DNA of 63,213 nucleotides, filler included, from Basidiobolus meristosporus CBS 931.73 (Eukaryota; Fungi; Basidiobolomycota): the NCBI GenBank assembly GCA_002104905.1. It is 3 parts of 3 records of this genome, joined end to end, with 100 filler letters (N's around TTAATTAATTAA, not from the genome) between each part and the next. Parts side by side here need not be neighbours in the genome. Positions count along the whole stretch, not along the records: positions 1 to 12,880 come from MCFE01001221.1; 2 more parts are not named here. One strand, written 5' to 3'. Positions 11,964 to 12,880 of this stretch are shown here, in pieces. The position numbers and the translations under genes were made by a program. The number at the start of each line of letters is the position of its first letter. Position 1 is the first letter of the stretch. The notes under the pieces are model-generated. The model was not told the origin of the DNA, did not search any database, and worked only from the letters and a program-made list of their open reading frames with translations.

Positions 11964-12046
11964 TGGTAACAGTGAGATTCGAACTCACGCCTCTTACGAG
12001 ACCGCAACTTGAGTGCGGCGCCTTAGACCAACTCGGCCATGTTACC
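11964..12046 (-). tRNA. tRNA-Leu(CAA), intronless
   Basis: CCGCA-CTCAAGT-TGCGG anticodon arm, long variable arm, GAGTTCGAATCTC. Confidence 0.96.
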
Positions 12047-12360
12047 AGCTTGTACACAAACAGGCAATGTCATAACACTAAGCGATAGCTGATAACATAT
12101 CCGCATAGCTTAAGGGGAGGGGGGGGGGAAGAAAGGATACCTTCGCTACTCATGCGGCATCTGTTCTCTCAAGCACAATATTATCCAAGACGTATTTGCA
12201 CCCTGATTGCCACATTTCTTCAGACAGATCTTCCAAATATAATCTACGGATTTGTATACTATGTGAAAGGCAAAATACAATTATAATGCTAGGACCTCCT
12301 TAGGTAAATCTATATATACATTTTCCAAAAATGTATGCTCTTTAACTAGGGCTTCATCAA

Positions 12361-12433
12361 GGGGGTCTAGCTCAGATGGTAGAGCGCTCGCTTAGCATGC
12401 GAGAGGCACTGGGATCGATACCCAGGTCCTCCA
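12361..12433 (+). tRNA. tRNA-Ala(AGC)
   Basis: G3:U70 identity pair, CTCGC-TTAGCAT-GCGAG arm, ATCGATA T-loop. Confidence 0.96.
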
Positions 12434-12612
12434 TGGAACTTTCTCTATTTTGCAGTAGATACATTTTGCTGGTTAACTCGTTTACGCAGCGGTTTATTCA
12501 ATTTTCATCATGGGTTCTCTTAGATTTCGGTACAATCAAGGTTCAAAAATTTCTATCTAAATAGTCGAAAAATTTCTGTAGAGCAAAACATTCAGATGTC
12601 AAAAATAAAGGT

Positions 12613-12681
12613 CACCCAACGTGGGGGTCGAACCCACAACCTTGAGATTAAGAGTCTCACGCTCTACCGATTGAGCTAGCC
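12613..12681 (-). tRNA. tRNA-Lys(CTT), first 4 nt replaced by telomeric repeat
   Basis: GGCTAGCTCAATCGGTAGAGCG-TGAGA-CTCTTAA-TCTCA...GTTGGGTG; only 3 of the 7 5' acceptor-stem bases are present before CCCTAA repeats begin. Confidence 0.92.
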
Positions 12682-12880
12682 TTAGGGTTAGGGTTAGGGT
12701 TAGGGTTAGGGTTAGGGTTAGGGTTAGGGTTAGGGTTAGGGTTAGGGTTAGGGTTAGGGTTAGGGTTAGGGTTAGGGTTAGGGTTAGGGTTAGGGTTAGG
12801 GTTAGGGTTAGGGTTAGGGTTAGGGTTAGGGTTAGGGTTAGGGTTAGGGTTAGGGTTAGGGTTAGGGTTAGGGTTAGGGT
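12682..12880 (+). repeat. Telomeric array (TTAGGG)33, oriented toward a chromosome end at the right
   Basis: 199 nt of perfect TTAGGG repeat ending at the contig break. Confidence 0.97.

Follow-up and report, generated by a model that had tools for sequence, protein, structure and literature searches.

A telomere repeat array joined directly to a truncated tRNA-Lys gene in Basidiobolus meristosporus: a probable chromosome healing event

In Basidiobolus meristosporus CBS 931.73 (assembly GCA_002104905.1), contig MCFE01001221.1 ends in a perfect array of TTAGGG repeats that begins immediately after nucleotide 5 of a tRNA-Lys(CTT) gene. As far as the last tRNA base the contig runs colinear with an intact sister copy, and the repeats lie at the end of the record in the outward orientation. 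The arrangement probably arose by loss of the terminal sequence from a point inside a tRNA array close to a chromosome end, followed by the acquisition of new telomere repeats, as in classical chromosome healing. The event as reconstructed would comprise the breakage of one copy of the locus (haplotype or paralogue) in a tandem array, at a tRNA-Lys(CTT) gene and between its nucleotides 4 and 5, the loss of all sequence distal to the break and the joining of new TTAGGG repeats straight onto the last remaining tRNA base by de novo telomere addition.

Results

Organization of the contig

The analysed stretch is the entire 12,880-bp contig MCFE01001221.1. It was compared with L001, the terminal 19.8 kb of record MCFE01000194.1 (135,950 bp) from the same assembly; this record is referred to here as the sister contig. 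The features of MCFE01001221.1 are the following:

1-4320, no strand assigned: flank common to the sister contig, matching L001 5288-9591.
116-688: gene for a 190-aa protein of no Pfam family, one residue off ORX94845.1 of the sister contig.
3412-3588: weak copia-like gag_pre-integrase remnant, below the Pfam cut-off.
5651-7722, minus strand: decayed Ty3/gypsy pol fragment comprising RNase H, an integrase zinc finger and a weak integrase core.
7723-12681, no strand assigned: 0.84 of one 5,898-bp array unit, with 10 tRNA genes and the CBM_19 gene, delimited by alignment to L001 14317-19276.
9305-10081, plus strand: within the array unit, gene coding for a 258-aa protein that looks secreted and has four CBM_19-type chitin-binding repeats rich in cysteine.
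12601-12609, minus strand: T-run TTTATTTTT, located 3 nt past the tRNA-Lys 3' end, the expected Pol III terminator.
12613-12681, minus strand: tRNA-Lys(CTT) remnant, nucleotides 5-73 of 73, defined by ARAGORN, Rfam, sister-copy alignment and fold.
12682-12880, plus strand: telomere array of 33.2 TTAGGG repeats, defined by repeat match and record length.

The terminal repeat array

The terminal array displays a 100% match to the TTAGGG repeat with zero indels over 199 nt and reaches the final base of the contig. As the record is exactly 12,880 bp long, the repeats constitute its end. The G-rich strand runs 5' to 3' outward at the end of the molecule, as expected for a healed terminus. TTAGGG is what we take to be the telomere repeat of B. 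meristosporus, on the strength of this one end and of general knowledge of fungi, and a length of about 200 bp is a typical size for a complete fungal telomere. The search of the literature found no description of Basidiobolus telomeres. An interstitial telomeric tract, inserted during the repair of a break in a chromosome that runs on farther out, would also leave a record ending in repeats with nothing visible beyond them. Only one side of the tract borders on non-telomeric DNA, as the record of MCFE01001221.1 ends within the repeats. However, long reads of at least 10 kb would be expected to cross a 200-bp repeat and to allow the assembler to extend past it, and the tract is perfect and of the size of a fungal telomere. 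An interstitial tract is very improbable.

The tRNA-Lys remnant

On the plus strand the sequence directly before the array, ...GATTGAGCTAGCC, is the reverse complement of tRNA-Lys(CTT) from nucleotide 5 on. The remnant retains 69 of the 73 nucleotides of the gene, including intact A and B boxes, the anticodon arm and the 3' acceptor strand, while nucleotides 1-4 (GCCC) are gone. The T-run that follows its 3' end is the same as at the intact tRNA-Lys copies. ARAGORN calls a tRNA-Lys(CTT) at 12614-12686 on the minus strand, a result reached only with borrowed telomere bases in the acceptor stem. The Rfam tRNA model aligns to the remnant locally, over model positions 8-63 of 71, with 50.3 bits. 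In contrast, the other nine tRNAs of MCFE01001221.1 align over positions 1-71, and so does the intact tRNA-Lys copy at L001 13311-13383, which scores 64 bits and begins GCCCGGC. The start of the sister gene, together with the full-length alignment, establishes that the remnant lacks exactly nucleotides 1-4 and that its true extent is 12613-12681. A sequence-only reading of this DNA had proposed a loss of four bases and a start at 12613, and the alignment to the intact sister copy reproduces both values exactly.

The intact tRNA-Lys folds into a cloverleaf with a 7-bp acceptor stem at -25.5 kcal/mol. The telomere-fused version does not adopt a cloverleaf, and its fold of -19.0 kcal/mol is no better than that of shuffled sequences (z-score -0.07). 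Thus the complete cloverleaf with a 7-bp acceptor stem that is expected of a functional tRNA is present in the intact sister copies and absent from the remnant. The remnant, with its internal Pol III promoter and its terminator, may nevertheless bind TFIIIC or be transcribed, as far as its sequence indicates. A telomere-tRNA chimeric RNA is plausible from the promoter anatomy, and any product of the remnant would, from the folding model, lack the acceptor stem.

The junction

The repeats start at the base right after tRNA nucleotide 5 and no foreign subtelomeric DNA is found at the junction. The tRNA side ends in ...AGCC, and the search for microhomology or a telomere-like seed at the junction returned an overlap of 0 nt, the first base past the junction being G in the sister copy and T in the telomere. 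A perfect GGG seed lies 3 nt farther out in the intact sequence and was left unused. The unused GGG and the lack of pairing between ...GCC and the TTAGGG template are unusual for seed-primed healing by telomerase, although a seed or microhomology is usual rather than obligatory in healing events. We infer that the repeats were synthesised by telomerase and do not stem from the end-joining of a telomeric fragment. With no microhomology and the GGG unused, telomerase, the end-joining of a repeat fragment and seed-independent addition after resection are not separable at this junction. The missing microhomology or telomerase seed would also suit telomere capture, in which the repeats are acquired from another chromosome end through recombination or break-induced replication. 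Capture, however, normally brings subtelomeric DNA with it, while in MCFE01001221.1 the tRNA sequence passes straight into the repeats, which makes this origin highly improbable. A Ty3-like integrase cutting at the site of Pol III initiation was also considered as the cause of the break, and was rejected because neither an LTR nor any other trace of an element separates the tRNA from the telomere.

Comparison with the sister contig

The same locus is present on MCFE01000194.1, where tRNA-Lys(CTT) is intact twice with identical flanks. An exact protein look-up finds the 258-aa CBM_19 protein encoded twice near the end of this record. Positions 7723-12681 of MCFE01001221.1 align with L001 14317-19276 over 4,960 columns with 2 substitutions and one 1-nt indel (99.94%), and the match between the two contigs stops exactly at base 12681. 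Past this point the sister reads GGGC, the complement of tRNA nucleotides 1-4 (GCCC), followed by TAAGTGCATT... and the rest of the unit, whereas MCFE01001221.1 reads TTAGGG. The sister sequence beyond the junction comprises the upstream flank of tRNA-Lys, tRNA-Asn, tRNA-Tyr, tRNA-Gly, tRNA-Met, another CBM_19 gene and another intact copy of tRNA-Lys. Up to the repeats, MCFE01001221.1 is thus colinear with an unbroken copy that runs on past the junction, as chromosome healing predicts. This supports the proposal of the sequence-only reading that the chromosome broke at the 5' edge of the tRNA-Lys gene and was capped by telomere repeats.

The flanks of the two contigs are less alike than the arrays. 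Between positions 1-4320 and L001 5288-9591 there are 74 substitutions, of which 51 are transitions, and a single indel of 16 bp, a divergence of about 1.7%, and a further 1.3 kb of MCFE01001221.1 (4321-5650) is absent from the sister. MCFE01001221.1 also carries the longer Ty3/gypsy pol fragment and reaches the telomere after only 0.84 of one array unit. Long-read noise would appear as many small indels, and with only one indel the divergence of the flank is real. Because of the 74 substitutions in 4.3 kb, MCFE01001221.1 is, as judged from the alignment, a separate genomic copy, either a distinct haplotype or a paralogue, and not a duplicate assembly. Two haplotypes of one locus are the simplest reading of the two contigs, and a published account describes Basidiobolus as at least diploid, with haplotypes that diverge from each other (PMC3281927). 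The near-identity of the array between the contigs could reflect homogenisation, or polishing with reads from all copies.

The sequence data place the junction on one 12.9-kb contig of a 2016 long-read or hybrid assembly, and an assembly or library artefact has to be weighed, in which a chimeric long read or a mis-join put repeats on a read ending in the tRNA array. The contig is among the smallest of the assembly, its 12,880 bp being about the length of one read, and its array part is near-identical to MCFE01000194.1, both of which would suit such an origin. A natural end ligated to a fragment, in contrast, would be expected to give CCCTAA followed by subtelomere and not the outward TTAGGG found here. 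Furthermore, the divergence of the flank by substitutions with almost no indels (74 and one, respectively, in 4.3 kb) indicates what would be a well-polished, distinct copy with its own multi-read support, not single-read noise, and an error-free repeat tract of 199 nt is unlikely to come from a single raw long read. Taken with these points, an artefact is an unlikely source of the junction.

The tRNA/CBM_19 tandem array

The array unit of MCFE01000194.1 is 5,898 bp long and is repeated in tandem in at least 2.3 copies, the contig ending inside the array (L001 9933-19820). Each unit consists of one gene for the secreted-looking protein with four CBM_19 repeats and of 12 tRNA genes. The tRNAs are Gly-TCC, Ser-GCT, Ile-AAT, Ser-AGA, Gln-TTG, Leu-CAA, Ala-AGC, Lys-CTT, Asn-GTT, an intron-bearing Tyr-GTA, Gly-GCC and Met-CAT. 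Such a mixed tandem array of tRNA and protein genes is unusual for a fungus. The part of the unit retained on MCFE01001221.1 holds ten tRNA genes according to ARAGORN (8049-12686), eight of which lie on the minus strand. No obvious common upstream motif was found among the twelve tRNA genes of the unit, so their internal promoters may suffice.

Several further observations concern the unit. The tRNA that ARAGORN reports as '???' at L001 14156-14240 (minus strand) is tRNA-Tyr(GTA), whose anticodon is followed by a short intron and whose Rfam score is 60 bits. The tRNA-Ser(AGA) and tRNA-Ile(AAT) genes at 11390-11552 lie on the same (minus) strand, separated by 3 nt with no T-run between them, and by analogy with the Ser-Met pair of fission yeast they are probably a dimeric, co-transcribed gene. 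The CBM_19 gene is also present on a Logan contig of a relative (ERR14048323; L004 1-2173), with 77% nucleotide and 80% amino-acid identity. It is bounded there by the ends of tRNA-Met and tRNA-Gly(TCC), as in MCFE01001221.1. With the same flanking tRNAs in a relative, the gene order of the unit is older than the strain and conserved across species. Two runs from the same sample (1 million letters each) contain 0.86 and 0.65 of the sampled array words (9000-12690). Such word content is expected of runs this small only if the array unit exists in very many copies, and hints at a high-copy array. The plasmid collection, queried with 8000-12650 of MCFE01001221.1, gave no match; likewise, a metagenome scan with the spacer and the tRNA-Lys 3' end gave no match, and one with the CBM_19 protein gave no confirmed relative.

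Transposon debris and the terminal 12 kb

The gene at 116-688 is the last ordinary gene of MCFE01001221.1, and 12 kb of transposon debris and the partial array unit separate it from the telomere. The Ty3/gypsy pol fragment ends exactly at the return of array sequence, at a point 77 nt upstream of the site that tRNA-Tyr occupies in the sister, and only 346 bp of the fragment are retained on the sister contig. This edge fits tRNA-targeted integration followed by deletion. A word search for the gypsy RNase H/integrase fragment found no match at E <= 1e-30, full-length Pol probably falling outside the length range searched. The sequence-only reading had described an end with no subtelomere. Degenerate repeats are indeed absent, but the terminal 12 kb are built of decayed retrotransposons and the partial tRNA/CBM_19 unit, so the description stands for the former only.

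Discussion

Relation to classical chromosome healing

The end of MCFE01001221.1 resembles classical cases of de novo telomere addition in that canonical repeats are attached directly to non-telomeric sequence that is colinear in an unbroken reference copy. Similarly, the event is a terminal deletion in which no subtelomeric DNA has been transferred. In contrast to the classical examples, the junction displays no TG- or G-rich seed and no microhomology, the GGG 3 nt farther out being passed over; the break in B. meristosporus lies inside a Pol III gene of a tandem tRNA array, and the host is an early-diverging fungus. Telomere addition to internal sequence without microhomology is also a feature of ciliate macronuclear development and of DNA elimination in Ascaris. 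In these systems, however, many defined sites are broken in each somatic nucleus, whereas identical sites are unbroken in the B. meristosporus genome, for which no separation of germline and soma is known.

Location of the break

Chance is a sufficient explanation for a break within a tRNA gene: tRNA genes occupy 917 of the 5,898 bp of the unit (15.5%), so that a random break lands in one of them about 1 time in 6. As identical intact copies of tRNA-Lys remain, the loss of this one should cost nothing. By analogy with yeasts, pausing of replication forks at tRNA genes may nevertheless have caused the break to fall where it did. Yeast tRNA genes pause replication forks and are fragile, most of all when they are met head-on (PMC7073672). 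The tRNA-Lys gene is transcribed towards the interior and would meet an end-bound fork head-on. As at the yeast barriers, which are sensitive to Rrm3/Pif1/Pfh1, the break is at a tRNA gene that would oppose an end-bound fork, and 8 of the 10 tRNA genes of the contig share this orientation. Unlike at the yeast barriers, the break is at the 5' (transcription start) edge and not on the side that an end-bound fork meets first.

A recurrent or programmed rule

Chromosome ends formed at tRNA genes by a recurrent or programmed rule, as raised by the sequence-only reading, would account for a tandem tRNA array lying directly at a telomere, and three further points agree with it. One end of every Entamoeba chromosome carries a tRNA array, as described in a 2026 preprint (bioRxiv 10.64898/2026.07.06.736064). 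Basidiobolus has been reported to possess very many small chromosomes, from 60 to many hundreds (PMC3281927), and the word content of the two very small runs hints at an array of high copy number. Against such a rule, the two intact tRNA-Lys sites with identical flanks on MCFE01000194.1 indicate that the sequence does not dictate cutting, a random break would strike a tRNA gene in about one case of six, and the evidence consists of a single case at one chromosome end. A programmed site would be broken in all copies, or many ends would share the same type of junction, and the two intact sites on the sister contig depart from this expectation. The sequence-only reading held that a general rule would fail if all other ends had ordinary subtelomeres and sister strains continued the chromosome past an intact tRNA-Lys, and such a continuation is seen here in a sister copy within the same genome. 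Thus, the rule is very unlikely, and a healed one-off break is preferred.

The terminal tRNA arrays of Entamoeba are, by analogy, the closest architectural parallel, as they also place tandem multi-tRNA units at a chromosome end. The Entamoeba units, however, contain 1-5 tRNAs with short tandem repeats between them, whereas that of Basidiobolus spans 5.9 kb with 12 tRNAs and a protein gene, and is capped by ordinary TTAGGG repeats at the one end known.

Significance for Basidiobolus

The healed break in tRNA-Lys looks like a real, well-documented but ordinary one-off event, which adds a fresh case to a process already known and does not define a novel type of chromosome end. Healing is seen here at single-base resolution in a clean natural case, and the assembly that contains it also holds the unbroken sister copy. 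The fungal lineage concerned has been little studied, and its karyotype is unusual. The contig also offers a first view of how a chromosome of Basidiobolus ends, with about 200 bp of TTAGGG, no degenerate repeats, and a tRNA/CBM_19 array together with retrotransposon debris. That high-copy tRNA arrays could be the habitual ends of the small Basidiobolus chromosomes, with breaks in Pol III genes and telomere addition recurring there, is a very doubtful extension drawn by analogy. If it were true, recurrent breaks in Pol III genes would trim chromosome ends or give rise to new small chromosomes, and the tRNA remnant beside the telomere, by binding TFIIIC, could serve as a chromatin boundary. If tRNA arrays mark many ends, Basidiobolus would parallel Entamoeba in this respect, and the arrays might bear on the origin of its many small chromosomes.
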